Below the pieces are notes generated by a model that ran no database searches, was not told the DNA's origin, and saw only the letters and a program-made list of their open reading frames with translations. Positions 1 through 64,000 of a DNA stretch of 64,000 nt are shown in pieces. The position numbers and the translations under genes are program-made. The stretch's first letter is position 1; each line of letters starts with the position of its first letter. Origin of the DNA: Hemiscyllium ocellatum (lineage: Eukaryota); contig NW_026867509.1 in assembly GCF_020745735.1 (NCBI RefSeq), positions 1,736,001 to 1,800,000 of the forward strand. Reading direction: 5' to 3'.

Positions 1-864
1 CGACAGTGTGGACTCTCTGGGTGCACCACGTATTACTTGGTGGGGATAGCAGTGAGTGATTTTCTTGTGATCATCACTGGGTGCATCCTGAATCGGATCG
101 GTGGCATTTATTTCCGACACAGCACACTGTCCACGACCACTGCCTGCGCAGTCAGCACCGTGATGATCTATACCAGCCGAGATGGCTCAGTCTGGCTGAC
201 CGTGGCATTCACCATCGACCGTTTCGTGGCCATATGCTGCCAGAATATGAAGACCAGGTACTGCACTGAGAAAACTGCATCACTGTTCATTGGAGTAGTT
301 TGTGTCCTGAGCTGTATCAAAAATCTGCCTTCCTACTTCGTCTACCAGCCCTTGTACATTGTGGACGGGAGGTCCTGGTTCTGTGACTTCAGAGACACGT
401 ACTATAACTCACCTGCATGAAAATCCTATGACTGGCTGAATCACATCTTGACGCCTATTCTCCCGTTCCTTCTTATTCTACTGCTCAATGCCATGACTGT
501 CAGGTACATCTTGGTAGCCAGCAGTGCCCGAAGGAGGCTTCGGGGGTTGGCGAGCCACGGAGACTCAGAAATGGCCAACCGCAAGAGATCCATCATACTG
601 CTCTTCACTATCTCGCTCAGTTTCCTCCTTCTATGGGTCACCTATGTCGGGCGCTTCCTCTATGTGCGGGTTACAGGTGAGGCATATTTCAGCGGCTTAG
701 ATTTCACTGACCCACAGTTTATTCTCCAAGAAACGACGAACATGCTGCAAATATTAAGTTCCTGCAACAACGTCTTCATTTATGCAATATCCCAGAACAA
801 ATTCCGAGATGAACTGAAGAAAGTGATGTTGTCCCCCTTCACATCTCTCGCTGTGTGCAAATAA
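1..864 (+). pseudogene. GPR139-like class A GPCR copy A, exon 2 (5' part outside window), one in-frame nonsense codon
   Basis: Frame 1 reads RQCGLSGCTTYYLVGIAVSDFLVII..DGSVWLTVAFTIDRFVAIC..WFC..TPILPFLLILLLNA..NRKRSIILLF..SSCNNVFIY..VCK*. ORFs 37-420 and 448-864 are in the same frame and separated only by TGA at 418-420; copy E has TGG (Trp) at this position. Confidence 0.88.
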
Positions 865-2958
865 TGTTTTGACGTTTTCCATCGATCAGAGTGACTCAGT
901 GCATAAAATATTCTCTCCGACTAAAAAACTAAATAATGTTTGTGCGTTTCGTGCTTCACTACCTGAGATATGACCAGTTCATTTTCCAGCCTTTACATCG
1001 CCTGTTATTAAGACAAATGGAAAATAAATACCAGCCGAAGAAGTGTTTTTATGGATGTGAGACAAAACTGTCTTCTATGCATCTGATGACTGCCTTATAC
1101 TTCTCGTGGTCTCGGCTAAGTCATTTGATATTCATCTATTTTGCTGCTTCCCTCCTTCCCTCTCAGTCGCCATTCTATCCTTCCTTCCTCCTTCGCCATC
1201 ATTCGTGCTCAGGACTATTGCATCTATTTATTTGAATCGCTCACGTTGCCTTTTACTTTGACGTAGACCCGATGAACAGCTCATTACATCCTAAAAAATG
1301 TTCTCGACAGTTTTCATGTTCTCACTGCATCATACAATCCATGCCTCTCCTACTAAATCTCAGATTTACTTTTGGCAGCACCAGAGATCTAGGCTCCTCC
1401 ACCCCGTCCCAGCCTCTACACACCAAACCTTGACATGCAGACATATATTCTGGACCTAAAGTCAAATGTAACTCTCGTTCCTTTAACCACAAGAAAATCA
1501 AGGTTATTTTCTTGATTTCCCAACATTGCGTTTTGATCAATGTTCTAAAAAGCAAACAGAAACGATGCTTTGCTTGTACTACAGACAATTAATACATCTG
1601 CCAGGTCCTGATTGTTATTCCTCTCCTTTCCCTGTGTGAATATTGTTAAGGGTCAAAGGACACAATCTGGTGGTGGTTTCGGAAAAATTACGCGTCCATT
1701 TTCAATCAGAGAAATTTAATGTTTCTGCTATTTATTCTGCAATGAAATCGATATTATCATGAGGACAAACAATTGCTCCTCAATTTCAACTATTGAGGAC
1801 ATCTACATTGTTATTTATCTGTTTTTACTCACACTAATAACTTAATTTTTTTTTAAAAATGTGTGTCATACATTCTTAGGAAGTGAACGTATCCACTAAA
1901 GTTTCTTGCATATTATTCATGCTGTAATAGGGCTAGGATTTATAGAAGTTTCAACATTCATGCAAATTGAAAATGTAATGCAACAGGTGAATTGAACACC
2001 TTCCTTTAATTTACCATGTTCTTATCGTTGAGAGCACGGGTAAGTGGAGCTGAGTCCATAAAACAAATCAGCAATTAGCTTATTATAAGGTGGAGCAGGC
2101 TTAAAGCGTCGAAGCCCCTATTCCTGCTCCTAATTCGAGTGTTCCTATCACAGTCAACTGGAACACGCAGTTTTCTGATGAAGAGTCACCGGGCTCAAAA
2201 TTCTAACTCTGCTTTCTTCCAACAGCTGCTGCTAAATCTCCTGAGTTTCGCCAGCAACTTGAGTTTAGTTTCAGATCTTCAGCATGCACAGCACGTTATT
2301 TTATTGTTATGGTACAGACAATAATATGAAATATCAATTAACGATTGTCCTGATATAATGTTTGAAAGTTCTGTACAGGAAGTGGACTTTGACAAAACAC
2401 TTTTTTGTTTGCATATCTCGATGAGTTGGCAATTTGCACGACTTTAATCTTTCCTGTGGTGTATCTGTATGCTGCACAGTACAGTTATTTCAACGGCTAA
2501 CACCGACAGGTTTGCGTTATTCTGGACCTGCGAATCGACAGCATATCATTTCGGAGCTGTTATCATGAAGGCGCAATGGCAGTACGCAACAACCCACAAT
2601 GTGTTTAACGTTGTAGAGGTTGTTCCAGTGTCTCATTACTAGAATCTTGTGACAGGTCATTGTATCTCAAACAGGATACTGCAGTTCCCTGTTTTGCCTG
2701 AAGATTTTGCTGGATCAAAACGAGTCCCTGAATTTTCTATCGCACTTCATTCCTATAACAATAAAACATTTTGGAACACCATGAAGGATGTAAAATAAAT
2801 TAGTTGTTTTCGTTCTCGAAATTGACGGCATTCCGTTCAATAATAGATTTATACCAATTAAAGTGTTGTGTCCGAATGATAAGTATCAGCTATCACCTTG
2901 AACTCGGGAACCACATTAGATCCACTCCTGATCTCACTGTTTGCCTAGACCCTCCGAG

Positions 2959-2997
2959 AGTTTTTGTACACGGTCAGCCCAGTTCTGAGTCTCTGTG
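2959..2997 (-). other. Recombination signal sequence, 23-bp spacer (V1a)
   Basis: Minus strand: CACAGAG + ACTCAGAACTGGGCTGACCGTGT (23 nt) + ACAAAAACT, directly after the V coding end. Confidence 0.93.
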
Positions 2998-3803
2998 GGA
3001 CTCAGTGCGCAGTAATACACTGCAGTGTCTGTGAGTACTGTTTTCAAAACCTTCAGCTGCATAGTGCGGTTCACTTGGTCAAAGTCCCAGGAGAGCTTGT
3101 CTGATAGAAAACTCGTTTTCTGGCTATATTTGTTTATCTGCAGCAGAAAATTCATGGATCCGTTGGAAGGTTGACGGTACCAGAACAGAGCAGGATTGCT
3201 GTTTATTGTAGAGTACTTACAGAACAACAGGGCATCATCACCCTCGTTTACTGTGATTACAGTCGGAGTTTGTGAGACAGAATCGCCATGACAAAGTCCT
3301 GTAAGAGCCAAGAATAGTAGAAATTTAATGAGGCACTTCAACATTCTTATCTCATATACTCAGCCAGTTTACCTTCATCAACAACCCGAGAAAAAAAAAT
3401 CAGGGAATTTGGACTGGGATCAATTTCATATGAGGAGATCATTCCCCATTTCATCTCCCACAACGTGTAAGGAAAATTGAAATATATTGGTGAATAAAAA
3501 ACACTCCATTCTGTCGAATCATCTCAATGGCCTCAGTCCTGCCTGAATTTGCCGTCTAACTATTCCACTGCCATTCACTAACGTAAATTTGCTAATTTCT
3601 CCCGAAATCTGCTCATTGTTGGGGAAAGCTTAGATCTGAATAGTTTTATTTAGGAGAATGTATTCTTACTTCTGCATCACTCAAATTGATCGAGTAAACG
3701 TAAGTCCCAGCAAAGAGCTGACATACATAAGTAGACAAGCTTTCAACGTACCAGTGAGAAGACCTATAGTTGAGAGGAGTAAACAAAGAGCTCCAGGTAA
3801 CAT
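2998..3803 (-). CDS. TRAV: TCR alpha/delta-type V gene segment, family 1 copy a, apparently functional (leader exon 3803-3752, intron 3751-3299, V exon 3298-2998)
   Basis: 52-nt leader exon ATG TTA CCT..ACT G followed by GTACGT donor; acceptor TTGGCTCTTACAG. Spliced product MLPGALCLLLSTIGLLTGLCHG-DSVSQ..FC..WYRQ..DTAVYYCALSP has the Ig V-set Cys/Trp/Cys and ends at a 23-RSS. TRAV versus TRDV cannot be settled from this window. Confidence 0.92.
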
Positions 3804-4839
3804 GTTTGCAGAGAATTGCGGTGAATGTGAGCAGAACTGGCTGAAGCTAAAATGGGTTTCATCAAGAGTAGGGTAATTGAGGTTGAGTAATTTCCGGATC
3901 TCTCCTCGTTGGATCATTGTTGCTCAAGGCATCACATGATAGCCAATGAGCTACAGGCTCCCTTATTACTCAATTCCGCCAATCAGCTTCAAGCTCTTTT
4001 GAGCTCCACTTCATATTATAGTTGGTGTGAGAAAGGAACAAAGTTCTGAAAGATGTTTAGTAGAGCCGAAAAGTACACTCAGTTTTTTCTTCACAGTTGG
4101 TGCAAGACCTGCTGAGTCTCTCTAGTTATTTCTGTTTTTGTATTGGATTTCAAGCAACCACTGTTCTTTGTTATTTTTGTCAAGCCAACTGTTGTAATTA
4201 GAGCCATTGACCGTGAAGTCCTACATTGGGTTTTGAAACTTGGATCAGTCAGGGACCCCTGGGCCATGGGTATAAACAGCAGAATTTGAATCTCCTCACT
4301 TCAAGGACCGAATCCGAGCTGGATGACCACGGTCAGTGTACTCTCCATATTTAAATCAAGGGTTACTTGGCGACGGAATAGCAGCATCTGTGTAGTTATT
4401 TCAGGCGCAAAGTAAACTTGTTCACCTACAAGCAGGGTTTTGGACAGAAATTAAACAAAATATTGTCCCATAACGATTATTATTTCTGTAAGCAAATGCA
4501 GAAAATAAATTTGGTTCATGTTGTTTGAGTATCAGAAATGTTGTACCCCAGTTAACACAGCTCCTGTGGGACTTAAAAAGCCACTTCAGTTGATGCATAG
4601 GATGAATCGGCCTGGCTGATTCTGCTGCAATACTGAGGGAACGAAACAAACGAATTAACACACTTTCAATGCATGTAACTGGAGAATCGAATGTCGCTTC
4701 TAATGCATTTACTGGCATGATCCATTCTAACTGAATTTGTTTAATTTCACTTTGTGTCATCGAAAACATAGTTCCTGGGTATCAGAAACATTGCCGTGCA
4801 TCAAACACAGAGCTCACCGCCACGTTGCCTCAGGCTAAC

Positions 4840-5950
4840 ACATTTTATGAAGTAAAAAAAGACCGTCTGGTAAAGTCTCCCTCATTTGAATGGGAATGGT
4901 GAAAGGGCAGACGTACATGTCAACACAACTTCCAAATCCTCACTGAAGCGAATGCACGTTTGCCAGGTTTTCAAGTGATACAAAAATAAAAGGGCAGGTA
5001 ATTTGTGATGATGATCAAAGAGACTATAAAAGACCAAGCTACAGACTGTCTCAGTAGGTGTGACTATGGCGTACTCTGGTGAGGTCTCCAGGAAATTTAC
5101 CGGACCAGGAAATAAACAATTTATAAGTGGGGTAAAACCAAGTCATGAATTTTCATCAAACATTCTCTAGATGATGGCACACTGGTTTAAGGGTAACCAT
5201 TGCTGTCTGAAAGCACTAAAGACCCAAGTTCGATTTCAGCCTCAGGTAGCTGTAAGTATGGGGTTTCCACATTCTGTCTGAGCCTGACTAGGTTTCCTGT
5301 GGGTGTTCTGGTTTCTGGCCACAGTCAAACGTTGGGCAGGTTAGGTAAATTAGACATAGGAGATGCAGGGTAGTGTGGGTCTGGATATTATGTTCATCAG
5401 AGGCTCAATGGGCCGAATGGCATGCATCCACACAGCAGGATTCTATATTTAAATTGCGTAATGACTGACCTTTTTAATGTCTTTGTCTGTGGGATTTGGC
5501 GCCGCTAGCAGCCAGCATTTATTGCATATCACTAGTTGTCCTTATGACGGTGAGGGTGAGAGGAACCCCTGCAGCTCACTTGCTCTGGGTTGACTTACAA
5601 TGCGATTAAGAAGGGAATTCCAGGATTCTTCCCAATCGACAGTGAAAAAAAAATCAGTGCATATCCATGTCAGAATGGTGACTGCATTGGAAGGGAACTT
5701 GAAAGTGGTAGTGTTGTCACATATCTCCTGGCCATTGTCCTTATTGATGGAAGTGGTCGTAGGGTTGGAACGTTGTGTCTGAGGATCTTTGCTAAACGTC
5801 TGCATTCCATCGGTGGTTGAGGGAGTGGGTGGATGTGGAAGTAGTAGCAATCAAGTGGCTGCTTTGTCCTGAATGGTGACAAACATCTTGGGTGTTGTTT
5901 AGAATGTACTCAACTGGGCAAGTAGAGAGTATTCCCGTCACACCCTTGAC
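4840..5950. repeat. Shared upstream block (conserved segment + decayed V-SINE + CR1 3' fragment), repeated at about 7570-8690 and 61600-62700
   Basis: All three copies contain AAGTCTC(C/G)CTCATTTGAATG, then a degenerate SINE and a reverse CR1 fragment in the same order. Boundaries are approximate. Confidence 0.65.
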
Positions 5951-6494
5951 TTCTGCAATGTAGATAGTGGCAGGCTTTGGGGAGTCAGGAAATATGTTAA
6001 TAATCACAGAACTTTTTGTCTCTGACCTGCTCTTGTAAACATTGTGCTAATTTGTTGGATCCAGTTCAGGCTTTGGTCATTAAAGCCTCCACTATTTTGA
6101 CAGTGGGGAATTCAGTGATGCTAACAACATATTTCCTTCAAGTTTACTACAATTCTGATTTAACCTGATCTTTATTCTCTGTGCATCAAGCTCATTACTT
6201 TTCACATTCTTCAAATTCGTCTTCAACAGTTTCTCACCATTCTGCCCTCTGAGAGCATTACGACTTTATCTCTACCGTCCCTTTTCTCTATTAATGTTTC
6301 TGACTTGCAAATATATCCTTACTTCACCTCCATCCCCATATCCGATTGCTATCACTTCTGACAATCTTTAAATTTTGCTGTTCCATACTTTCCCCTGCAG
6401 TTTACTCCCATTTCCATTGTCTCTCATTTTGGAGTACAGAAGTAGTAACACTGATTCTTCAAGTTCAGCATAACAGGACTCCCCACTCTATACG

Positions 6495-6533
6495 AGTTTT
6501 AGTGAAACCTCGCCCTCTCTTTGTGACACTGTG
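6495..6533 (-). other. RSS, 23-bp spacer (V2a)
   Basis: CACAGTG + TCACAAAGAGAGGGCGAGGTTTC (23 nt) + ACTAAAACT. Confidence 0.92.
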
Positions 6534-6870
6534 CCCTCATTGCACAGAGGTAGATGGCGGAGTCATTAAGTCTGGCGTCTTTCATTGTCAGGATACTGGT
6601 CTTGTAGTCTCCATTGATTGAAGCCGTAATTCTCTCGGATGAAGTATCTTCCCTTTTGGCCATCACCAAATGCTGGGGTGGTTGATTCGGGAGCTGTCTG
6701 TACCAATGCACTGTTTTAAATGAAGTGGCAAAGGAGCAATTCATGGACACAATTCCCACTTCAGTAACAACCATCCACAGAGGATGTTTCTTCACTTCGC
6801 CTTCTCCAATTCCCTCCTTGGAGATCACTTTGGAAAACAGCAGGAGGAGACTGCAAATTCGAATCATCAT
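6534..6870 (-). CDS. TRAV: TCR alpha/delta-type V gene segment, family 2 copy a; leader and V in one exon
   Basis: Open frame MMIRICSLLLLFSKVISKEGIG-EGEVKK..SMNCSF..HWYRQLP..DSAIYLCAMR ending at a 23-RSS; 337 nt from ATG to heptamer. Confidence 0.88.
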
Positions 6871-6917
6871 CAAATTGCAAGAACAGTGGTGAAAACAATT
6901 GTCCACGACGCTTTGTT

Positions 6918-6949
6918 GAGGAAACAGCAATTAATTCTAACATTTATAT
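6918..6949 (-). promoter_or_regulatory. Putative V2a core promoter: TATA box (TATAAAT) and Ets-like GAGGAA
   Basis: TATAAAT on the minus strand at 6949-6943 and GAGGAA near 6918; both are kept at equivalent positions upstream of V2b (about 63640-63670). Confidence 0.5.
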
Positions 6950-7134
6950 GAGTAAGTAACGAGAAAAAACTTTCGTCTCCTGTTAAACTCTGAACGCCTC
7001 CCTGTTTGAGTTGTAGAAGAAGCTGAATCTCAGTGAATGTTACTGTAACAATCCTCTCATACTGACATCGCTCACACTGTCTGAAAGTTCATTCCTCCTC
7101 CAGACCTCTTTCACGATATTTATCATGGATTCGC

Positions 7135-7152
7135 ACTGACATCTAGTGGTGT
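7135..7152 (-). promoter_or_regulatory. Putative CTCF site upstream of V2a
   Basis: Minus strand CCACTAGATGTCAG versus the CTCF core CCASYAGRKGGCRS (one mismatch); identical at 63854-63866 upstream of V2b. Confidence 0.5.
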
Positions 7153-9179
7153 TTATAAGTAATTGCATTGTTCAAATTCCCTCTCAAATTGCGTGTCACC
7201 AATATGCTAAAGAAATTATGCATCTTCATCCCCCGTATAACACTGCGAACATGTGAGGCTCTGCATTTCAAATTCATGTGCAGCATCCACCGATTTCAGA
7301 CTATGTTTGCCCTGCACTGTGAGTAAATCTCTATTCCACAAGGAAAATTGGCAATGAATGAAGCAGCAAAATCGAAAATTGCTGTTCCTTGTAAGATTTA
7401 TTGTAAGATCCATCATAAGCGGAATTGGTTAGCTTTACTGTGTCACATTGTATACATAACCGTTGTATCTATATCAGATGCCTTGCAGTATGTCAAATTT
7501 ACGGCTAACGCCACATTGTCACACACTTTTTGAGGTAGATGTAAGCATTCCCAGCCACGCACACACAAGTTAAGCAAATGTGTTAAAGAGAAAGAATACA
7601 CACTGTGGTAAAGTCTCGCTCATTTGAATGGGAATGGTGAAAGAGCAGAGATTCATGTCAATGCACCAGCCAAATCCTGATTGAAGGGAATGTACCACTG
7701 TCACGTTTACAGATGAGAGAAAAATAAATGGGAAGGGAAATGGTGATGATGATTCAAACAACCTTAAAGAAGACGACGTTACAAACTATTTCAGTGAGTG
7801 TGACTATACAGTACCTTGGCGAGATCGCGAGGATGTTTGCATTGCCAGGAAATGAGCAATTTCTGAGTGGTGCATTACCGAATCATGAATTCTCAGGAAG
7901 CATTCTTCTGATGATGGCACGGTGGCTCAGTGTTTAGCACTGCTGTCTCCCTGCAGCAATCAGCTGGGTTCCTTTTCAGTCTCAGGCACGAGCCTGCGTG
8001 AAGTTTGCACATTTTCCCTCTCTCAGCATGAGTATCCTATAGGTGCTGTTGAATCCTTCCACAGTTCAAAACTGGATAAAGCAGGTAAGTTAGCAATTGG
8101 AGGTGCCGGGTTAGAATGTATCTGGGCGTGATGCACTTCAGAGATTCGATAAGCCGAATGCCATGCTGCCATGCTGGAGGGACATCATGCTTAGATGTGA
8201 AACTCTTTTCTTTATTATTGATTTTGTCAGACGTGGGCATCATTGACTGACCACCCTTTATTTACAATTCCTAGTTGCCCTTGGGAAGGTGGTGGTGAGC
8301 TGTCTTCTTGAACCGCTGCAGTTCATCTGCTGTGGATTGACCCACAATACCACAGAGGGAATTTCAGGACACTGACCCAGATACAGCGACAAAGAAGGAA
8401 TGGAGATCTATTTCAGGATGGTGAGTGGCTTGGACAGGAACTTGATGGTGGTCGTCTTCTCATTCATCAGCTGACACTTTTCCTTCCAGATGGATTTGGT
8501 CATGCGTTTCGAAGGTGCTGTGTGAGGGTCTTAGCTAAACTTTGGCAGTGCATCTTTTAGGTAATACACACGGAGAGTCGATGATGGAAGCAATGGGTAC
8601 TTGTGAATGCTGTGCCAATCAAGCTGGTTGATTTCTCCTGGATGGTGTTGAGAATCTTAAGAATTGTTGGGGCTGCACTCATCCAGACACGTAAGGAGCA
8701 TTCAACCTGACTTGTGCATTGTAGATGGTGGACCAGCTTTGTGGAGACAGCAAGTAAGTTACTAGGAGTGAAAACATCTTTTCCATGTTCGCTCTATTCA
8801 GGTTTCCAAGTATTCTATAAGTTTCAACCAGGTTCCCCATCATCCTTCTAAACTTATTCGAGTAGAGACCCAGAGGCTTCAATCAACTCTCATATAATAA
8901 GTGCTTCTTCCTGGGATCATTCTTGCAAGCCTCCTCTGAACCCCCTCCAAGGCCAACACATCTTTGCTTAGAAATGAGGCCGAAAATTGTTCACAACATT
9001 CCAAAATGTTGTCTCACTAGAGCCATGTACAGCCTCAGGAATACACCCCTGCTCTTGCATTCTAGCCTTCTCAAAATGAGTGCTGATACTGCATTTGCCT
9101 TCCCAACTGCTAACTCATAAGGTCATACAGCACTGAAATGATCCAGTCCCACTCATTAACTTGCTAAGCTTAATATTTG

Positions 9180-18071: not shown

Positions 18072-18459
18072 NGAAACTGGAAAAGGATGGGAAAGGATCT
18101 TAAGACCTAGATTTGAGATCTAGCTGTCTCTGCGGCTTGTTCTGATGACGTCTCGAAAATCTGTGGACAAAACTGTTGACACAAATAATAAGAGCACTCT
18201 TACAAATTAATTAAATACGTGAACTAATCTGAAATTTCAAAACAAACACTTAATTGAAGAGATAAAGTTGACGATCTTAGAAATGGAAATATGAATCATC
18301 AGCGGTTCAGTTGATGGAGAGAGAAAACTAGGTTTGTGGAAAGGTTGGAAGCACAGAATCCACGATTTTCCACAGATATAGAGCAAACATTTATTTTACC
18401 AATGATGCAGACTGAAGGCGTGAAACAGCACATTGAACTCGATGTTCACTGACCTGTAA

Positions 18460-41708: not shown

Positions 41709-41723
41709 ACACACACACACGCG

Positions 41724-41763: not shown

Positions 41764-41766
<3 letters not shown>

Positions 41767-46994: not shown

Positions 46995-48545
46995 ATGCAT
47001 GACCCAGCCATTGCGCCATTCTTCATTTTCTATTCAATTGTTGCAGCTATCGGTTGCCGTGGAGTCACTGATGTTCGAGAGAATCGATTAGCTCATCATG
47101 TCTTTCCAGAAGTTTTATTCTTTTCCCTTCCAGAATTCGGTAGCATTTTCTCCACGTGCAACTCCTTGATTTTAAGGCACATCCACAGGTCTCCAATCCG
47201 TATGATGCATCACAAAATAATATCTGTGCTACGGCAAATCATCATGAATTGCTTCCGACATCAGTATAATAAAGGGCACTGCGTTCTTCAACTTTCAATG
47301 CTGTAAACTTGGAGAAAAATCGTCTATGACACTCTGAACTGAGAAGTGTGGTGAATGACAATGCATGAATATTCAATTGTAATAGTGTCACAGATTGGAT
47401 CCAAATCCAATTCAGTAAAATGCAATTTGTTCCATTTTAGAATGAATTGTTTACCATGATGTGGCATGACGCATGGCCCGTGCTTCATATGAATATGTTC
47501 ATGGCAACCACATTATTCTTGTTATTCCGAATTGGACAAGTGGCTACTTAACATTAACTCAGTCACTGGAGAGCGATTTCGTTTCCTGGACTGATCATAT
47601 TGACAGATGATGTGATGGTGCAATGTTGGACTGGGGTGGAGAAAGTCAGACATGACAGTAGCCCAGGTTATTGTCCAGCGGGTTTGTTTGAAATAAGAAG
47701 ATTTCGGATTGCTGTTCCTTCATCACGTGTATTGCTAGATGTTTGATACTGCATTAGATGTCTAATACTGCAGTAGATGTCAAATAATTGTCAATGATTT
47801 CAGAAAAAGTAGACACTGGAAGTTGCAAGCTGATAGTTGAAGGCTGTTCCGTAAAATATTTCACGAGGTGACAGACAATATTTGCACTGAGTTTAGTAAT
47901 ATCTCATTTGATTTTTCACAAGCAACTTTTTGGCAATTATAATCTTAATGCAAGGATGGTGCTGTCCCTCGAGATGTATCACCTATTACCTTCTGGCAAT
48001 TGCAGTGAGTGATTTCCTCGTCATTACTACTGCCGTCACCTTCAACCGAATCAGCTGCATCTATTTTCGGGAAAACATTTTGTTCACTACTCCTGCGTGC
48101 ACTCTTAGCATTGTATTAGTCAATGCCACTCTGGATTGCTCGGTCTGGCTGACAGTGGCCTTCACCATCAGTCGCTTCACAGCCATCTGCTACCAGAGAC
48201 AGAAGACCAGATACAGCAAAGAGAAGGCTGCGTCACTGGTCATAGGAATGGTCTGTATTCTGAGTTGCATCAAGAACATGCCTTTGCGCTTTACATTCCA
48301 GCCTTTGTTCATTTTGGATGGGGTACCCTAATTTTATCTATGTGTGGTTGAAAACTAAGAGTGACTTCGATGGACTGGATTTCAGTAAACCGGAGTACAT
48401 CCTTGATGACAGCACCAACATACTCCAGTTACTTAGTTCCTGGAACAAGGTCTTCATATATACGGTCTCTCAGAATTTGTTTCAAACGCAAATGAAAAAA
48501 GTTCAGATTTACCCCTTCACTGCTCTCACCAGTTTCTTTAAATGA
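46995..48545 (+). pseudogene. GPR139-like GPCR copy C pseudogene (exon 1 about 46995-47061, exon 2 about 47923-48545) with internal deletion
   Basis: Exon 1 MHDPAIAPFFIFYSIVAAIG parallels copy B but lacks the GT donor at the equivalent position. In exon 2, ..FILDGVP* is joined directly to ..FIYVWLK..GLDFSKPEYIL..SSWNKVFIY, so TM5-TM6 is missing. Confidence 0.85.
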
Positions 48546-52060: not shown

Positions 52061-53493
52061 ATGTATGGCCCAGCGAATGTCTCGTTTTAAGCCCTTTATT
52101 ATTCAGCTCTTGCTACTACTGGTGTCCCTGGTCAGTAACCGATTCTAAGTATTTGTTTTCAAGTGCAAAAAGTATTTCCGTTTTTTTCTAATTGCCACCG
52201 CTGAAGGAAACGCAGCCAGATCACCGTGTAAATGTAAAGTATTAAGTTATACTAACTTGCACGCGTTTGCAGTACACAGCAACATTATATCCAAGCTGTT
52301 GTATTGAGCAATTGGCGAATAATCGGTTACTAGATTACTGGTTTGTGAATTGCAATGTGTGGTATTGCCAGAATAATAATAAGATTAGCTGCTCAAAATT
52401 TAATTCTATTACATTGTTGAAACGTCAAACTGCTCTTTTTGCTGTTGTCTGGAATAATGCCTTATCATTGTGTTCGATATTTTTATGCACAGATGACATG
52501 ATGATCCCGAAGAAAATTATTGCAGATACGTCATTATTTTAAGGATTAAAAGTTTCATCTCGTGATTACTCAAGTCAGTTCAATAATCGTTTTCAATTTC
52601 CCCCAGTCAACCTGCTAGCGATCATCATACTATTACAAGGACAGTGCGGACTTTCTGGGTGCACAACCTTTTCCTTGATGAGGACAACAGTGAGTGATTT
52701 TCTTGTGATCATCACTGAGTGCATCCTGAATCGGACTGGCGACATTTACTTTTGGCACGGTGCCCTGTCCACGACCACTACCTGTACAGTACGCACCGTG
52801 ATGATCTATGCCAGCCGGGATGGCTCAGTCTGGCTAACTGTTGAATTCACCATCGACCGTTTCGTCGTTACTAGTTGCTGAAGTCTGAAGACAAGTTACT
52901 GAGTCGAAAAAGTTACTGCTCTTCGGAGTGTTTTGCATCATGAGATGCATCAAGAACCTGCCTTCCTACTTCGTCTACCAGCCCTTGTACATTGTGGACG
53001 TGGTGTCCTGGTTCTGTGACTTCAGAGACTCGTACTTAAACTCTGTATGGAAATCCTATGACTGGCTGAATCACATCTTGACGCCTATTGTCTCATTCCT
53101 CCTTATTCTGCTGCTCAATGCTGTGACTGTTAGATACTCCTTGGTGGCCAGCAGTGCCCGAAGCAGACTCAGGGGCACAGCGAGCCACAGAAACTCAGAG
53201 AAGGCCAAGTGCAAGAGGTCCATCAGACTGCTCTTCACCATCTCCATCAGCTTCCTCCTTCTAAGGGTAACCTATGTCGGGCGCTTCCCCTGTGCGGCTT
53301 GCAGTTGAGGCATACTTCAGCGGCTTGGATGTCACTAACACACAGTTCATTCTCCAGAGAATCGACGAACATCTGCAGATACTAAGTTCTTGCAACAACG
53401 TCTTCATTTATGCAATATCCCAGAGCAAGTTCTGAGATGAACTAAACAAGGTGATGTTGTCTCCCTTCACATCTCTCGCTGTGTGCAAACAAT
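52061..53493 (+). pseudogene. GPR139-like GPCR copy E pseudogene (exon 1 52061-52130, exon 2 52607-about 53493), paralog of copy A
   Basis: Exon 1 MYGPANVSF*ALYYSALATTGVP G|GTCAGT; acceptor TTTCCCCCAG|TC AAC CTG; stops after DRFVVTSC, frameshifts, and the terminal TAA changed to CAA. Closely similar to 1-864. Confidence 0.9.
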
Positions 53494-54624
53494 GTTATCA
53501 TGTTTTCCGTCAATCAAGGGGGCTCAGTGTGTAACACATTCTCTCCCTGTCGAAATTAAATGACATTTGTGCGTTCATGCTTCTGTACTGGAATTGTGGA
53601 CAGCGTATTTATCAGCCTTGACATACTCTGTTACTAATACTCATGGAAAATAAACTAGCAGAAGATGTATTTTTAAGGATGAGGAAGTCACCTGTGGTCC
53701 ATGCCTGTCATGATTATTTTACATGGCCAATGATCCGAGCTATATCATTTGATATTCATTTCTTTCTCTCCTCCGCCCCTTCCCTCTCGGTCGCCATTCT
53801 TATGTTACTTCCGTTTTCTCCCTCATTCGTGTCTCAGCACTATTTCATCTATTTATTTGAATCATTCACGTTGTCTTTCAATTTGACACAATCCTGATGA
53901 ATAGTTCATTATGTCCTCAACAATGACCTCAACAGTTTTTTTGTTTTCGCTGGATTACATAATTGATGCTTCTCTTGGTAAAACTCAAATTTAGTTAAAG
54001 CCTTTCACAGTATTTGCAGTTCCAAAGAACACAGCCCCCTCGCCCTTCCCCACTCCAGCAAAACCTCCCCACGCTAAACCTCGTCATACACACATATATT
54101 CGGTGCCTGAAGTCAAATGCGTGGTATTTCCTTCAGCTACAAGAAAATCAAGGTTAATTTCATGATTTTCCAATGTTATGTTTTGATCAATAATATGCAG
54201 GACGAACAGAAACGATGTTTCTTTTGTCCTTTAGACAATTAACACATTTGCCAGGTCCTGCTTGTCGTTCCTCGCCTTACCCTCTATGAAGGTTCTCAAT
54301 GTGATAAGGCATTCAGATAAATTACGTGCGGCGATTTTCAGTGACTAATATATGATGTTTCTTCTACTTGTTCTGCAATAACAATTATATTACCATGCAG
54401 ACAAACAATTGCTCCTCGATTGCAAGTATTGTGGACATCTTCATTGTTATTTATCTGCACACACACACACACACACACACACATTTGAATGTGTGCAATA
54501 TATTCTTGGGAATTGAACATCTCCACCAAGGTTGTTGCCTATTCTTCATGCTGCAGTGGCGGTTGGACTGACACAAGTTTCAACAAACGCGCAGGATGAA
54601 AATCTAACAGAAGTGATTTTTGGA

Positions 54625-54725
54625 AGTTATTGGGCTAGTATAGGTTAGGTAGGACTCGGTCGGCGCAACATCGAGGGCCGAAGGGCCTGTACTGCGCTGT
54701 ATCCTTCTATGTTCTATGTTCTATG
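54625..54725 (+). mobile_element. Short young CR1 3' tail insertion, absent from the paralogous site near 1980
   Basis: GGCGCAACATCGAGGGCCGAAGGGCCTGTACTGCGCTGTA..TCTATGTTCTATGTTCTATG. Confidence 0.75.
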
Positions 54726-55299
54726 ATTAATTGAACACCAACCTTTAATTTGACATGTTCGTATCGGTGAGATCTGTGTCACCAAAAAAAATTAGGGCAT
54801 GATCTTATTGAATGTTGGAGCAGGCTCGAAAGGTCGGGTGGCCTTCCCCTGCTCCTCGTTCTTATGTTCCCATGTTCTTATAAAAGTCAACTGGGACACG
54901 CAGTTTTCTGATGACGAGTTAGTGGACTCAAAATTTTAACTCTGTTTTCTCCTGACAGACCGGCTGAGTTTCATCAGCAAGTTCTGTTTGGCTTCAGATT
55001 TCAGCACTCACTTGTCTTATTTTATTGTTCGAGAACAGACAACAAAAATTAAATACAAACTAATGATTGTTCTGACAATACATTTGAAAGTTCTGAACAT
55101 GAAGCGGACTTTCACAAAACCACACATTTTTGTTTATGCAACTCGATGAGTTGACAAAGTGTCCGAATTTAATCTTTCCTGTGTAGCACCTGCCGCACAG
55201 TAGTATGTGCCGACACCTGAGTAAGACAATGCAAATTGTCACATCATCCAAGAGGCATTCTAGCCATTTTGTTGTTCAGCAATTTGCGCACTAAATTCA

Positions 55300-55620
55300 G
55301 TTTTCACAGTGACCCGATATGAAGACCATCAGAAAAAAACATCAACGTGCTTCAAATCATCAATAGCCCCAACATCCAAGTTACCAACACCTAGATCCCA
55401 CTCCGCTAGTCTGGACATATGATAGCATGCCTAAGCTATGACTATGAAAATAAATCATCTTCACTGAGCTCAAAGGAGTACTCAAACGTCAAGGAAACAT
55501 TTCAAACACATCCTGAAGACTTCCCTCCAGAAATGGAAGAGATGTAAACACGTGGGTGACCGTCTTTCTATTCTAATCCAGTGGCACAACTTCCAAGCTG
55601 AAACTTGGAACAGGAATTGT
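55300..55620 (+). mobile_element. Possible RTE-clade LINE 3' remnant
   Basis: GTCAAGGAAACATTTCAAACACATCCTGAAGACTTCCCT resembles the GQRKRFKDTLKASL end of RTE ORFs. Confidence 0.4.
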
Positions 55621-57089
55621 AGAAATGTCACGAATGTCGAACCCAAAACTTAATTCCAACTCCCTCAGCAATGGCCAAATTCATGATGTTAAGTGTGGAT
55701 CTTGGAGTTGGTAGGAGTCATGCCACAACCCACAGAAATGTGGCGAATATCATGGAATTTTCTCATCTGAAATCGAACGCTTTAATGACTAATATGAGAA
55801 TCATGACCAGTTTAGACACATTTCAACATCCACCAGAACATGGTGGGGTGACACCTATATCCAGCTAGGGAGCAGTCAGATGTGCTGTTCGTTGCATCAC
55901 GATTCAAGATCAGGATTTATCAGATATCCTGTGGAGTCTAGGTGTTAACAGAGCCATGAGCTGGAATAGTAACCTTCACAACCTGAACAAAAAGCGAGGG
56001 TAATAATTGATATTATTTAAATTGAGTCTTCAAAAGCCTTGTGTTTTTCTGGAAAGCAAACCGTGTTTGTTCTCATATGGAGGCTTCATTATCATCTCTT
56101 TCCGGTTGGAAATTTCTCTCTTTTCATTCGCAATTATTCTTCCATTATGTAATCCAGTCTCGTGAAATGTGCCTTCATGCCTAGTGCGAGTCTTTTGAAT
56201 TAAACACGTTGACCAAATTCATCGTGGAACTTCTGGCCATTTCAAGCGAGGGTTCTGCAATCAGACGAGTTGAATGACGCTTTTTATTGGTGATGTACAT
56301 TTGCTGCAGCTCAGCAGCTCAAAGCAGGCTCCTCCTCTCTTCTTTCATGCAGCACGGCTGATGAACAACATCAAATTATAACAATTCCACTTTCTTCAGA
56401 AAGAAACCCAAGGCGACAATATGAACCTGTTCAATCTTCAATGTTATGCACAGGATTGGAAGGACATTCCATTCGGCGCAACTGATACTGCATATTCCTG
56501 CACTAAGTATTTAGGAGAATCAGGTTGATGTGATGCTGGTGCCTCTTTAAGCATCACGTTGAAATAACTTTTGTCTTAAATTATGTGCTCTGCTTTATGG
56601 ATTCTCATTGAGCAACCTCTTTGTAAATATTTTGGAAATATGTTATGCTTTATGCAGACATACCTATTGTAGTCATTCACGATATGAACAATTATGTCAT
56701 AAGTACTTGTTTTTTAATTGCATTTAAATGTGCTTAGCATTTCAACGAAAAAAGTCATATGCACAAAGTGCACAGAGAGCCTGTAGCCAGGTGCATTTGT
56801 GAAAAGCATTTACATCACCATTTGGTCAGCACAGATATGATGGTCCAAAGGGTCTGTTTCTATGCTGTATTGTTATATGACTGACGGTGACTGCTGGTTC
56901 ACCCTCTTGACTGAATGAACACGAAATTATAACATTATTGATAAATAAAAACCAAAAGAACAGCAGATGCTAAAAATCAGGACCAAAAACAGATGTCACT
57001 GGAAATGCTGAATAGGTATGGCAACAATTGTGAAGAAAGATCTGTGTGGAAGTTTTGGGTCCGTTACTGCCAAGCTTTTGCAGCAACTT

Positions 57090-57440
57090 CTCTTTTTGTT
57101 CATTACTTTATTGGTACTGGTAGTACTGAGTTGTCAGACACTGCAGTGTTTCATTGTACAACCATGTGCTGACACAAATAAGAAGCACTCCCACAAACCA
57201 TCTTTCCAGCTGCCCATCAGAAACTCTCATGACTGTCGACTTCTCAAAACGTCATCTCATGTGTGATCCGATCAAAAGGTTTCACCTCTTCTATAACAAA
57301 ATTGTTATGCTGACTAACTTCTGAGGGATGCCACGTCCCTCGTGGATCGTCTAGTCTGCAGAACCATTCACTGGATCCAAAGCCCAGAGTCCGGAACTTT
57401 ACTTTTGTGAGTCGCTATCAAAATTGGATTTTGTTTCTCT
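57090..57440 (-). pseudogene. Possible highly decayed V-segment relic
   Basis: A DSDSQ-like start at 57419, a Cys-equivalent codon about 280 nt later, then CTCAGTA + 24 nt + ACAAAAAGA. Confidence 0.3.
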
Positions 57441-58614
57441 CACTTATCGCCAGGGGGAGAAGAGTAACCCGATCATTTATGTGCAGCTTAAATATCAAGA
57501 TGTGATTTGCTGATAAAGAGTTAGGGAATTTGCTGAGACGATGAAAAGTGTTCATTTCTGTACAGCCTAACAGAATCCTCAAGCACCTAAGACTTTTACT
57601 GGAGGCTCTGACTCATTAGTCAGCCACTCTTCAATGCTTTTAATTGGTTTGTGTAGTTCAGATGTGAGTTACATCCTATCATCTTGATATTTTAAGCATG
57701 TCACTGTTATCCTTGACCTGTGAATCGACCAATGTGTCATTCTGAAACTGTTAACATGAAGGTACGGATCAGGACTTAATGAAGCACAATATGTTTGACA
57801 TCATTCAAATATGCTGTCCATCGCATTGCCAGCCCCGGTCGCGTTTCCTCAGATATCCTGCAGAGTTGATGTGCTAACAGAGACAAGAGCGGGAATAGTC
57901 AACCTCCGAACCTGAACGAAAAGCAAAGATAATAACTGCGACTATTTTAACTGCGCAAAGATAATAACTGCTACTATTTCAACTGTAGTTTTCTGGTAAA
58001 CGAACTGTATTTTTGCCTATTTGGCTCCTTCACTGTCATCTCTTTTCCTGTTTGAAATTTATCCCTTTTTCATTCACAGTTATTCCTCCATTTTATAATT
58101 CATTCTCGTGAAATGTGCCTTCATGCCTCGTGCGAGGTCTTTTGAAGTCAATATCCTCAACAAATTCATCGAGGAACTTCTGGAAATTTTTAGCGAGGGT
58201 TCTGGATTCACACGAGGTGAAGAACAATTTTATTGGTGATGTGGAAAGAGTGCCTGCAGCATTTATGAAAAATATTTTCATCATCAGTTGGTCAGCACAG
58301 ACATGTTGGACCAAAGGGACTGTTTCTATGTCGTATTGTTCTATGACCGACTATGACTCTAGGTTCACCCTTTTGACAGAATGAACAATAATTAATGACA
58401 TTGTTGGTGAATTCAAAACAGAAAGATCAATGATCGTGAAAATCAGGATCAAAAACAGTAGTTATGGAATAGCTGAGTAGGTATGGCAACATCAGTGAAG
58501 AAAACTCCGACTGAAAGTTCTGGGTCTAATTTTAATGAAGGATCAATACATCGAAACATTAACTCAACTATTTTTTCACATATGTTGATAGACCTGCCAA
58601 GCTTTTGCAGCAAC

Positions 58615-58980
58615 TCCTCTTTTTGTTCATTACGTTATTGCTGGTGGTGGTACTGAGTGATCAGGCACAGTAGTGTATCACCGTACAAAGATGTGCTGAC
58701 ACAAAGGCTGAGCACTTCCACAAACCATTTTTGCAATTGCTTATCAGAAACTCTCATGACTGTCGTCTACTCAATACATCATCTCACATGTGATCGTTTC
58801 AAAAGGTTTCACTTCTTCTATAACAAAAGGGTTATGCTGATTGGCAGGATGCAGGATGCCGAGTTCCAAGTGCATCCTCTTTTCTGATAAACCACGTTTT
58901 ACTGGATCGAATGCCCAAACACAGGAACTTTATTTTTGTGACACGCTACCAAATTTCGACATTGTTTCTCTCACTTATCG
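58615..58980 (-). pseudogene. Possible highly decayed V-segment relic (duplicate of 57090-57440)
   Basis: GSVSQ (GGT AGC GTG TCA CAA), TGGTTTATCAGAAAAGAGGA, ..GAT A CAC TAC TGT GCC, then CTCAGTA + 24 nt + ACAAAAAGA. Confidence 0.35.
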
Positions 58981-59692
58981 CCAAAGGGAGAAGAGCAACT
59001 CGTTGGTCTATACGCAGCTTAAATATCTAGATATGATTTGCTGACAAAAAAAATTAACCTAGTTGCGAGAGGATAAACAATGCTCATTTTCCATCCATCC
59101 AAACAAAATAAACCTCAAGTAACTGAGAGTTTTACTGGTACCTCTGACTCATTAGGCAGCTGCTACTCAATGTTTTTAATTGATTCGTTTGGTTCCAATG
59201 TGAGTTACATCATATCTCCTTCTTGATATTTTAAAGCATGTCAGCGTTACCCTTGACTTGTGAATTGACAACGTGCCATTCTGGAATGGTTCACGTGAAG
59301 GTACAGGGGCAGCACTCAATAACGCACAATATGTATGACATTGTTCAGATTATTCTAATCGTACATTATGAGAGTCCTGTGGCAAGTTATTCTCTGAACC
59401 TGAATGCTGTACTTCCGTTTTACTGGAGGATATTGCTGGATCAAACAAAGTTGTTGAATTTTCCATAGCAGCTCATCGCTGTCACAGCATTTTCCACTTT
59501 CCTGAAATGCACCAAAAAAGTTGTTTGTTTTTCCTTTACATTCACGCAACAGTTTGTTCATTTCAATAATGGATTTATAATAATTAAAGCTTTGTGTCCG
59601 AATGACCAGTATCAGATATCACTGTGAGCTGGAGAAGCGCTTCAGATCTCACTGTTTGCTGAACACGCTAACATGTAGAGTGATGGTCTTCG

Positions 59693-59731
59693 AATTTTTG
59701 TACAGGATCAGCCCAGTTCTCATTCTGTGTG
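59693..59731 (-). other. RSS, 23-bp spacer (V1b), partly degenerate
   Basis: CACACAG + AATGAGAACTGGGCTGATCCTGT (23 nt) + ACAAAAATT. Confidence 0.85.
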
Positions 59732-60538
59732 GGACACAGTGCGCAGTAATACACTGCGGAGTCTGTTAGTTCTGCATTCAACATATTCAGTTTGATAGTG
59801 CGGTTCGCAGGATCAAAATTCCAAGAAAGCCGGTCCAGTAGAAAACTCCCCGTTTTCTCACTATTTTAGTCTTTCTGCAGCAGAAACTGCAAGGATCCGT
59901 TGGAAGTTTGACGGTACCAGTACAGGTCAGGATTGTTGTTTATTGTAGTGTAATTACATAACAGCAGCACATCTTCCCCTTCATTCAGTTTGATTGCAGC
60001 TGGTGTTTGTGAGACAGAATCGCCATGACAAAATTCTGGAAAAGCCATGAGTTATACAAAATTAAATAAGGAATGACAATACATTTATCGTCGAGAATTC
60101 GCCCGTGTACCTTGATCAATAAACCGAGAAATAAATGAGGGAAGTTGAATTAAATTCCATTTCATATGGGGTGATCATTTCCCATTTCATCTCGCGAAAC
60201 CTGTTGGGGAACATGAAAACTGTTGGTGGACATAAAAAAAATCTCCCCTCGATCGAATCATCTGAATGGCCTTAGTCCTGTTTGGGTTTCCAGCCAAAAT
60301 ATTCCACTGCCATTCGCTCGTGGACATTCACTAATTTCTCCCAAATTCTACTCATTGCTGTGGCAAATACATATACAATTTTTTTGGGAGAATATATTGT
60401 CGCTTCTATGTTGCGCAAAATGCTTGAATAAAATGCAATTCTCAGCAAAGAACTGAAACACATACATAGACAAATGTTCGACCTACTAGTTATAACAACT
60501 GCAGCTGTGAAGAGTAAACCCAGAGCTCCTGGCAATAT
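59732..60538 (-). pseudogene. TRAV: TCR V family 1 copy b pseudogene (leader 60538-60487, V exon 60035-59732)
   Basis: Leader starts ATA where V1a has ATG; GTAGGT donor and TTTTCCAG acceptor are intact. An in-frame TAA follows FLLQKD (59868-59866), then the frame continues to DSAVYYCALCP. Confidence 0.9.
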
Positions 60539-63216
60539 GTTTGTGGAGAGTTGACGGTGAATGCGAGCAGAATTGGCTGAAGCTAAAATGGTTCACGTCA
60601 AGAGTTGGGTAATTCAGATTGTGTAATTTCTGGATCTCTGCTCGTTGGACAATCTTTGGAAAGGCATCTTGTGAAAGCCAATGAGCATCAGGGTCCTTTA
60701 TTCTCCATTTCAGTCAATAAGCTTCAAGCGCTTTTGAACCTAACTTTATATTATGGTTGATGTGATAAAGCAACAAAGTTCTCAATAAGCGTTGCTAGAC
60801 CCGAAAGGTTCACTCAGCTTTCTCTTCACAGTTGCTGCCAGACCTGCGAGATTCTCCAGTTGTTTGCTTTTGTATCGGATTTCCAGCAACTGCAGTTCTT
60901 TGCTAATTTGTTTCACCAACGGTAGTGATTAGAAGCAGGTAAATCTCGTTGACGATGTGATCCTTCGTTTGGGTTGTTAAATTGACGGAGCTCTGTGCAA
61001 TTGGTTTGAACAGCAGATGTTGAGTCTCCTGATTTCAGGAACAGAATGCAAACTGGTTTCCCACGGCCAGTGCAATGTCCACATATAAATGAGGGGTGGC
61101 CTGGTGATGGAATATCAGACTCTGTGCAGTTATTTCAGGTGTAAATTAAATTTATTCATCGACAAACAAGGCCGTGGAGAGAAATGAAACCAAACGTCTC
61201 ATATCGATTAATATTTCTGTAAGCAAACGCAGAAAATGAAATTAGTTCATGCTGTTCGAGTACCAGAACCGTGGAACACCAGTTAACAAAGCTGCTCTCG
61301 GTCTTCGACAGCCCCATCAGCTGTTGCACAGGACCTGAGTGTCTGGGAGATTCTGAGAAAATAATGACGAAATAACTAAACAAATATTTTTTGAAAGAAT
61401 ACAACAGTAGAATCGAATGTTGCCTCTGATGCATTGGCTGGTAAGATCCATTGTAACTGACTTGCATTAACTTTACTTTGAGTCATCGTAAACATGGCTC
61501 CTGCATGGATATCAAATGCAATGCAGTGGATCAAACACATGGTTCACCTCCACATTGTCTCAGATTATACCAGGCTAACGTATTGCTCAACGAAAACATA
61601 AGAGATTCTGTCTAAGTCTCCCTCATTTGAATGCAAGTGGTGGAAGAGCCGAGGTAGATGCCAATGTAAATTCCAAATTTAGACTGAAGTCGTTAGACAT
61701 GATACAAAAATAAATGGGATGGCAATTGGCGATGAGTATTCAAAGAGTAGATACGATAACCAACTTACAGCCTGTTCCAATGACTGAGACGAGATGAGAC
61801 TCTGGCGAGATCTCCAGGAAATTTGAAGCAACGAGAAAGAAACAATTTATGAGTGGGTCGAAAGCAAATCATGAATTTTCATCAAATGCTTACATGATGA
61901 TGGCTTTGTGACTTAGTGGTCAGCAGTCCTGCTTTATAGCACCAAAGACCCTGGTTCGATTTCAGCCTCATTGAACTGTCATTTTGGCATTTGGACCTTC
62001 TCCCGATGTCAGCACGGACGTCCTGTGGGTTTTCTGGTTACCTCCCACAGTCAAAAATGGGCAGGTTAGATAAGTTAGATATACAAGGTCTGGAGGTGAC
62101 GTCCTTCAGAGGCTTGACGAACAAATGGCGTGCGTCCACATGCAGGGATTATTTCTTTAGGTTGTGTAAGTATTGACAATTTTATATGTATTTGTAACAT
62201 GTAAGTACCGCTGACTGGCCAGCGTTTATTACCTGACCTTCGTTGTCCTTGGTGAGAGTTGCCTCCTTGAACTGCTGCAGTTCACCTATTTTTGATTGAC
62301 TGACAATGCCGAGAGAGGGAATGATCTGTTTTTGACCAAGTGACAGTGAAGGACCGTCAATATATTTCCAAATCAAGATGGTTACTGGCTTGGGTATAAT
62401 ATTGAAGGTGGTGGTGTTCCCATATATCTCCTGGCAATTGGCTTTCCAGATGGAAGGTTTCATGCATATGGAAGGTTGCGTCTGAGGATCACTGGTAACC
62501 TTCTGCATTGCATCTTGTAGTTGGTATACACTGAGCCACGGTGGTTGAGGAAGTGAATGTTCATGGATGTAGTGTCACTTCAGCCTACCTGCTTTCCCCT
62601 CGATGAGAAAGTTCCTTGGGCATTGTTCGGACTGCACTCATCTGGGAAAGTAGACAGTACTCTGTCACACCCCTGATTCTGTCATGCATATTCTGGCAGG
62701 CTTTATGCCGTCAGGACAGACATTACTGGCGGCAGTGCTCCTCGTCTCCGAACTGCTCTTGTAGCCATTATGTTTATGCGTTGGGTACAGTTGAGGTTTT
62801 GGTCATTAAAACCTCAAGGATGTTGACCGTCGGAAATTCAGTGAGGCTAACACCATGTTTCTTTCAAATTTTCTTCAATTGTGATTTACCTTGATCGTTA
62901 GCCTCTGTGCATCATGCTTGTTATTTGATACTTTCTCCCATTTCATCTTCAACAGTGATTCACCATTCTGCACTCTGCAAGTACTATTACTGCATCCTTC
63001 CACTTTCCATTTTCCCCATTAATGTTTATGATTTCCAGATATACCCTTCCTTCACCTCTATCTCCATAACCAATTGTCATTACATCTGACTAAATGTTGT
63101 TGCTCCATACTTTCTAGTGTAATTTGCATTCATTTGCCTTATGTCTGATTATGAATCACACCATCAGTAATACTCATTCTTTAAACCCAGCATAACAGAA
63201 CTCCCGACCCCATGCA

Positions 63217-63255
63217 AGTTTTAGTACAGACTCACCCAGTGTTTGTGACACTGTG
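63217..63255 (-). other. RSS, 23-bp spacer (V2b)
   Basis: CACAGTG + TCACAAACACTGGGTGAGTCTGT (23 nt) + ACTAAAACT. Confidence 0.92.
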
Positions 63256-63592
63256 TCCTCATTGCACAGAGGAAGGTGGCGGTGTCATTAAGTCTGGCGT
63301 CTTTAACAGTCAGAATACTGACTTTATTCACTGTACTGATTGAAGCAGTGATCCTCTCAGATGGATTATCTTCTCTTTTGGCCATCACCAGATGCTGGGG
63401 TGGATGATTCGGGAGCTGAATGTACCAACGCACTGTGCTAATTGCACTGGCAAACGAGCAATTCATGGACACAATTCCCAATTCAGTTACGACCATCCAG
63501 GTAGGAAGTTGCTTCACTTCACTTTCTCCAGTCACCTCCTTGGAGATCAGAGTAGAAAACAGCAGGACGACACCGCAAATTTGGAACATCAT
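63256..63592 (-). CDS. TRAV: TCR V family 2 copy b; single-exon leader plus V, open frame
   Basis: MMFQICGVVLLFSTLISKEVTG-ESEVKQ..SMNCSF..RWYIQLP..DTATFLCAMR; 337 nt from ATG to heptamer, as in V2a. Confidence 0.87.
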
Positions 63593-63851
63593 CAGATTGC
63601 AAGATAGGTGATGAAAGTAATTAACCATGGAGCTTCCTTGAGGAACTGTAGTTAATTATTACATTTATACAAGTATCTATCTAGAGCAATGCACGGTTCA
63701 CGTCTAACTCACGCTTAACCTGTTGGAGCTGCTGAAAAAACTGAATCTGTGTTTGTTTCTGAATCGAGCCTCTCACACTGACAGTCGTTCACATTGTCTG
63801 GAAGTACACGCCTACACCGGCCCTCATCTTCGATATTTAGCATGGATTCAC

Positions 63852-63869
63852 ACTGACATCTAGTGGTGT
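63852..63869 (-). promoter_or_regulatory. Putative CTCF site upstream of V2b
   Basis: CCACTAGATGTCAG, identical to the site upstream of V2a. Confidence 0.5.
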
Positions 63870-64000
63870 TGATAAGTAATTGCATAGTTCAAATTCTCAC
63901 ACCAGTTCCGGTTCAATGGATCAACTCAAAATAACAGACATGGTCTCCTTCACCGCATCACACAGTGAACAGGTGAGCCCCTGCATTTCAAATTCATGTG

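Follow-up and report, generated by a model that had tools for sequence, protein, structure and literature searches.

Co-duplication of class-A GPCR genes with T cell receptor-like V segments in the epaulette shark Hemiscyllium ocellatum

Introduction

Do G-protein-coupled receptor (GPCR) genes that lie among the variable (V) segments of a T cell receptor (TCR) locus share a job with their neighbours, or only the duplications that such a locus undergoes? The question is raised by a stretch of 64,000 nucleotides from the epaulette shark Hemiscyllium ocellatum (assembly GCF_020745735.1, NW_026867509.1, positions 1,736,001 to 1,800,000; hereafter the window), which holds five GPCR loci on the plus strand and, on the minus strand, four V segments of TCR-alpha-like type. 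An initial annotation, made from the sequence alone, described an array of orphan receptors resembling GPR139, woven into a cluster of V segments and co-duplicated with it, and offered two explanations: passive hitchhiking, or a receptor repertoire opened with the V locus in lymphocytes. GPR139 and GPR142 are vertebrate orphan receptors activated by L-Trp/L-Phe. The mammalian parallel that the annotation invoked is real, since olfactory receptor (OR) genes are interspersed among TRAV genes in human (OR10G2, OR4E2), mouse (Olfr1507-1509) and sheep (PMC4574546). A literature search of incomplete coverage returned no paper on an expansion of GPR139-like receptors in sharks or on their linkage to a TCR locus, and the arrangement is called undescribed only provisionally. 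We consider it probable that the window is a piece of the H. ocellatum TCR alpha/delta (TRA/TRD) V region and that the GPCR genes were co-duplicated passively inside this duplication-prone region, which would imply no shared job.

Results

GPCR copies are named A to E and V segments V1 to V4, in order of position. A block consisting of a GPCR gene, a V1-type segment and a V2-type segment occurs twice and collinearly, at 2-7280 and 52640-64000, with homology running through exons and spacers. Positions 2-1978 aligned with 52640-54607 (75.7% identity), 1990-2458 with 54729-55183, and 2514-7280 with 59244-64000 (71.5% identity). Both ends of the block lie beyond the window, and the block measures at least 7 kb. 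The repeated unit GPCR(+)/V1(-)/V2(-) of the initial annotation was thus recovered, and the collinear homology of coding and non-coding sequence bore out its proposal that an expanded GPCR family shares one amplification unit with V segments. About 4 kb (55184-59243, no strand) is confined to the second copy. Its first ~150 bp are common to the orthologous locus of the whale shark, so the first copy has lost sequence here, which accounts for at least some of the length difference.

Non-coding sequence of the two block copies was about 72-74% identical (24-28% of the non-coding sites differ), with 73.1% identity in the V1-V2 spacer. The coding sequences of V2 and V4 were 82.6% identical at the nucleotide level, with a synonymous divergence (dS) of 0.31 and a ratio of non-synonymous to synonymous divergence (dN/dS) of 0.54. 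The 3' flanks of GPCR copies A and E were 73.9% identical to each other, and 69.7% and 67.9% identical, respectively, to the orthologous flank of the whale shark. In the protein tree, the whale-shark protein P0047 was placed outside the group of A, E and H. ocellatum XP_060677331. By these identities and the tree, the block duplication is younger than the split from the whale-shark lineage and has roughly four-fifths (~80%) of its depth; age is expressed as depth relative to the whale-shark orthologue. Judged by this divergence, the block duplication is old.

An interspersed repeat of ~1.1 kb was observed inside and beside the duplicated block (4868-6002, 7606-8764, 61614-62535 and 35586-35908; copies 63-70% identical), a possible substrate for unequal crossing-over. 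A-type and B-type GPCR genes also have counterparts of 94-99% identity on other H. ocellatum scaffolds, namely XP_060677331/2/3 on a 6.18-Mb scaffold and XP_060679352 on a 188-kb scaffold, with consecutive accession numbers. Such similarity is a sign either that the A...B region was duplicated once more, on a large scale and much more recently, or that an alternative haplotype has a scaffold of its own.

Each V exon lies on the minus strand and is directly followed by the parts of a recombination signal sequence (RSS): a heptamer beginning with CAC, a spacer of 23 bp and a nonamer rich in A. V1 (3344-2998) is open and TCR-alpha-like, with an unsplit leader (ATG at 3344), a Pfam V-set match of 2.1e-14 and the RSS CACAGAG-23-ACAAAAACT at 2997-2959. 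V2 (6870-6534; ATG at 6870) is an open member of a second V family, also with an unsplit leader, and its RSS (6533-6495) reads CACAGTG-23-ACTAAAACT. V3 (60021-59732, within the feature 59693-60069), a paralogue of V1, is a pseudogene with an in-frame TAA near 59866 and without a leader ATG; the heptamer of its RSS (59731-59693, CACACAG-23-ACAAAAATT) matches at five of seven positions. V4 (63592-63256), a paralogue of V2, is open and followed by CACAGTG-23-ACTAAAACT at 63255-63217. V1/V3 and V2/V4 therefore represent two distinct V families. The predicted five plus-strand GPCR loci and four RSS-bearing minus-strand V segments were all confirmed by tblastn and by the 23-bp spacer of each RSS, with the qualification that V3, flanked by an RSS like the others, is a pseudogene.

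The V-set E-values of V1, V2 and V4 ranged from 2e-8 to 2e-14. V1 and V2 showed the Cys...Trp...Tyr-x-Cys framework pattern; V3 is homologous but stop-bearing. The best matches of V1 in the PDB were TCR alpha chains. The matches of V2 were headed by three antibody scDb/diabody constructs that lack a qualifying stretch; the top matches that did have a scored stretch were all TCR alpha chains. A homologue search with V1 returned nothing, as shark V segments are seemingly not annotated as proteins of such length. Apart from V1 to V4, a six-frame profile search of the window returned only a V1-type relic of framework region (FR) 3 at 41137-41235 on the plus strand (...LKTELTNSAVY.C), weak (tblastn E 6e-6) and without an RSS; the profile held one mis-framed row from V3, which left strong matches unaffected. 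No joining (J) or constant (C) segment was found within the 64-kb window. For want of an abutting V exon, three further RSS-like sites (10980, 50540 and 59626) were discounted, the last being a chance match ~60 bp past the RSS of V3 itself.

In place of a split leader (L-PART1, intron, L-PART2), V1, V2 and V4 pass from a good signal peptide directly into FR1. The unsplit leaders lie at 3344-3285 (V1), 6870-6805 (V2) and 63592-63527 (V4), and a V2-type segment of the zebra shark has one too (19509-19600 of the sampled locus L002). A whale-shark V (4039-4329 of locus L001) apparently has the usual split leader. The unsplit leader is an atypical structure that leaves the identity of these elements as V segments unaffected.

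The five GPCR loci, all on the plus strand, were returned by tblastn with copy B as the query. The long reading frame of copy B lacks the ~23-residue N-terminus of its full-length database relatives, and a search of the window with this N-terminus located first exons upstream at 22828 (B), 46995 (D) and 52061 (E). The genes thus have two exons, which corrects the gene structure first read from the sequence. Copy B (22828-25213; tblastn match 24320-25213) is the sole intact copy: exon 1 (22828-22897, donor G|GTAAGA) and exon 2 (24315-25213, acceptor ...CACAG|CC), separated by an intron of ~1.4 kb, join cleanly into a 322-aa product with a complete 7tm_1 domain (Pfam 2.7e-19) and 98.8% identity to H. 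ocellatum XP_060679352.

The remaining copies are broken. Copy A (4-864, feature 1-864) is represented by exon 2 only, exon 1 lying beyond the start of the window, and is interrupted by one in-frame TGA (418-420) at a position that is Trp in relatives; the rest is open up to the stop at 862-864, and the protein is 98% identical to Chiloscyllium proteins and 96% identical to XP_060677331. Copy C (38534-39331) is a pseudogene with several stops and frameshifts, for which the N-terminus search of the window found no exon 1. Copy D (46995-48545) is also a pseudogene. Its first exon is open from 46995 (21 codons matched, to 47054), with GA replacing GT at the donor expected after codon 23 (~47065), and its second exon (47930-48545) has lost ~90 codons and is frameshifted. 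Copy E (52061-53486), the pseudogene paralogue of A, has a TAA in exon 1 (52061-52129) as well as frameshifts and stops in exon 2 (52612-53486). Four of the five GPCR copies are thus disrupted, compared with one V segment in four, and the term "array" of GPCRs is an overstatement. In the protein tree, the local copies mix three subfamilies, with A/E in one, B and D in a second, old clade and C in a third.

A homologue search retrieved 1840 proteins at E<=1e-10. The best 120 of these came nearly all from sharks and rays and were mostly auto-named "probable G-protein coupled receptor 139"; the names among them included GPR139, galanin receptor and FMRFamide receptor, and none was an OR. In Pfam, copy B matched 7tm_1 and Srx only, with no OR-specific model. 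The family is large, with several Atlas clusters of 70-150 members. GPR139 was the sole solved structure matched by copy B at E<1e-5, and the match was weak (E 1.6e-7, 34 bits). Copy B resembles GPR139 in W-A-P in transmembrane helix (TM) 6, DRF/DRY in TM3 and N-x-F/V-x-Y replacing NPxxY.

Mutagenesis has assigned F109, H187, W241 and N271, plus R244, to the agonist pocket of GPR139 (PMC5430874). In a HMMER alignment of low identity, in which positions are possibly off by one, copy B keeps F3x33, W6x48 and N7x38 of this pocket. H187 (5x43) is replaced by Phe in copy B and by Asp in the family consensus, R244 (6x51) by Leu and Tyr, respectively, and the pocket-lining E108 (3x32) by Val/Ile. The family consensus at F109/H187/W241/R244/N271 is Y/D/W/Y/N (121 members). 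Given the weak match and the replaced residues, the Trp/Phe pharmacology is not transferable, and the analogy with L-Trp/L-Phe sensing that the initial annotation had raised was not carried over. The label "GPR139-like" is a weak one; on these comparisons it denotes a distant resemblance, not orthology. The shark family is also multi-copy with fast turnover, unlike GPR139 and GPR142, each a single conserved orthologue.

The copy A protein and its whale-shark orthologue gave a dN/dS of 0.12 (dS 0.48), and copy B gave 0.12-0.16 with its whale-shark and zebra-shark relatives. Constraint was also visible between the block copies, where exon 2 of A and E was 84.6% identical, against 74% in the flanks. 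As far as substitution patterns tell, the shark receptors are real, functional genes under strong purifying selection. Positions that line the pocket (copy B residues 90-91, 181, 246-249 and 281; window 24315-25213) vary between shark subclades: at 5x43, most members have Asp and the clade of copy B has Phe, and 6x51 is either Tyr or Leu. Such differences between subclades, combined with an overall dN/dS of only 0.12-0.16, would fit ligand diversification.

Among the homologues listed, H. ocellatum members of the family were distributed over at least 11 scaffolds or chromosomes, and paralogues of 55-70% identity number in the dozens. The best 120 homologues include ten proteins of the whale shark, all on one V-bearing chromosome of 11.7 Mb, and six of the zebra shark, five of them on one chromosome of 16.4 Mb. 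V segments were sought within 10 kb of the GPCR genes in five 20-kb loci, ~110 kb in all, from whale shark, zebra shark and little skate. At the whale-shark locus at 2.49 Mb (L001), a V with an RSS-like signal lies on the strand opposite to the GPCR, 5.7 kb upstream; downstream, an annotated V-set gene begins at 18026, with its V exons beyond the 20-kb locus. At a zebra-shark locus (L002), a V2-type segment with a 23-RSS lies 5.5 kb downstream and a V1-type pseudogene 7.8 kb downstream, both on the same strand as the GPCR. The other three loci had no V in the 10-kb range: the three-gene cluster of the little skate (L003), a zebra-shark paralogue on a 108-Mb chromosome (L004) and the whale-shark orthologue of A/E (L005), where homology with the window extends ~1.7 kb past the gene.

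The linkage was therefore recovered in other species at two of the five sampled loci, and at two of the three that come from the small chromosomes bearing the clusters in whale shark and zebra shark. If a genome of ~3.5 Gb is assumed to hold a few hundred V segments, an arbitrary site would have one within 10 kb with a probability of ~0.002, far below two in five. On this comparison, one branch of the family has lain among TCR V segments since before the sampled orectolobiform families diverged. The initial annotation had named as its counter-case a family spread through the genome with no enrichment near V segments and no lymphoid expression. The spread is there and so is the enrichment: the family is both genome-wide and concentrated near V segments. 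The order, orientation and spacing of GPCR and V are unlike between species. A V2-type segment followed ~3 kb on, in V orientation, by a V1-type segment is a recurrent pair in the epaulette shark (6870-2959 and 63592-59693) and the zebra shark (L002, 19545-22151), with the GPCR on either side and on either strand.

The window is vertebrate DNA of ~41% G+C with much retroelement debris. An assembly gap of exactly 500 N, a conventional length, lies at 17573-18072 (no strand) inside retrotransposon debris. It is flanked by reverse-transcriptase fragments on opposite strands: a weak minus-strand fragment to the left and, to the right, a plus-strand fragment of a long interspersed nuclear element (LINE) whose protein is 45% identical to another copy at 12583-13236. 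The gap touches none of the GPCR loci or V segments and no reading frame relies on it, open reading frames (ORFs) that span it being runs of X. The A-V1-V2 block is on another contig than the rest of the window, so the order and orientation of the block copies rest on the scaffold join.

Three further features were observed. The segment 34000-35400 has 51% G+C and a GC skew of -0.41, and all three plus frames are open; its ORFs are of low complexity and rich in Pro, Ser, His and Leu, and the sole repeat detected was a 2-copy tandem repeat of 79 bp at its start. A 162-aa ORF at 42695-43183 on the minus strand, without a Pfam match, has a GIY-YIG-like motif (IYKIPC...YGGQTGR...HEH), which suggests the endonuclease of a Penelope-like retroelement. 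A relic of C2H2 zinc-finger repeats lies at 45543-45797 on the plus strand.

Discussion

In the explanation we favour, members of a large, elasmobranch-wide family of two-exon class-A GPCRs sit between the V segments of a region that probably grows and decays by tandem segmental duplication. A single event copied a block of at least 7 kb that held one GPCR gene and one V segment of each type, V1 and V2. The V array is rich in repeats, and the copying was presumably a common segmental duplication or unequal crossing-over that carried the GPCRs along. Afterwards, E, V3 and part of the spacer decayed, A recently gained its nonsense codon, and V1, V2 and V4 stayed open. Co-duplication would then be a mechanical outcome of location inside the V array. 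The V RSSs face lower coordinates, and by the standard V(D)J mechanism a deletional V-J join would cut out of the rearranged allele any GPCR gene located between its V and its J.

This is the hitchhiker option of the initial annotation, and several lines of evidence led us to prefer it. The homology of the block copies is collinear across exons and spacers, and four-fifths of the local GPCR copies have decayed. Members on at least 11 H. ocellatum scaffolds, together with the three sampled loci that have no V in the 10-kb range, one of them the A/E orthologue of the whale shark, argue that the family is not bound to V segments. The arrangement of GPCR and V, including their relative orientation, varies between whale shark and zebra shark, and the OR genes among TRAV genes are a precedent (PMC4574546). 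Two points weigh against passive co-duplication: GPCR and V are associated at far more of the sampled loci than chance would give, and a linkage that has persisted for so long could reflect selection rather than inertia.

One alternative takes the receptors as a putative chemoreceptor-like repertoire, a chemosensory or neuro-sensory family of elasmobranchs for which V-region chromatin (monoallelic, late-replicating and duplication-prone) would be a favourable home, like that of the mouse OR cluster adjoining Tcra. The size of the family, the birth-and-death pattern in the cluster, and pocket positions that vary by subclade under a low overall dN/dS agree with such a repertoire, as does the paucity of ORs and GPCRs reported in cartilaginous fishes (PMC8455134, PMC11979771). 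The step from V-region chromatin to receptor choice is speculation, however, and we regard this alternative as unlikely. Quite unlikely, in our estimate, is the related proposal that a receptor branch has been held in the TCR alpha/delta V array since before the orectolobiform family split because V chromatin gives it a putative stochastic, allele-exclusive or lymphoid expression. If true, it would be an independent and deeper counterpart of the mammalian OR-TRA linkage, in animals almost without ORs.

The other option of the initial annotation was a coupling to lymphocytes, in which the GPCRs would profit from enhancers or open chromatin in the V region, be expressed as a sensing repertoire in developing or mature T cells and be kept inside the V array by selection. 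GPCR-V linkage in three orectolobiform sharks and purifying selection on the receptors are in its favour. We nevertheless consider this putative coupling very unlikely, since most copies in the window are dead, neither the orientation of the GPCRs nor their distance from V is conserved, the whale-shark A/E orthologue has no V within 10 kb, many family members are on other chromosomes, and deletional rearrangement would remove the copies between the used V and J in the very T cells concerned. That both block copies are one locus assembled twice, as their position on separate contigs with a 500-N gap between them might suggest, is so improbable that we treat this haplotype or collapsed-assembly artefact as ruled out: haplotypes are never so divergent as to differ at about a quarter of neutral sites, and the copies have different lesions and a 4-kb length difference.

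Passive co-duplication in sharks would resemble the mammalian OR/TRA arrangement in that class-A GPCR genes unrelated to immunity lie among TCR alpha/delta V segments and would undergo the same locus-scale duplications and deletions. Unlike in mammals, the shark GPCRs are not of the OR family, GPR139 being the nearest solved structure, and their copies are many and deep in the V array, whereas mammals have two or three at its 5' edge. In the shark, co-duplication of GPCR and V is demonstrated, and most local copies are pseudogenes. Tandem segmental duplication, divergence, pseudogenisation and a mixture of intact and dead copies are also characteristic of the birth-and-death evolution of antigen-receptor V clusters and chemoreceptor clusters, which differ from the present locus in that here two unrelated multigene families share one duplication unit.

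For the 64-kb window, ordinary segmental duplication is the likeliest explanation, and no functional link to immunity is shown. Non-immune GPCRs interleaved and co-duplicated with the V segments of a shark TRA/TRD region, an echo of the ORs in the mammalian TRA locus, suggest that the capture and amplification of receptor genes is a recurrent event in V arrays. A large GPCR family under constraint, in animals poor in ORs and GPCRs, would provide candidates for an unrecognised sensory or signalling repertoire.

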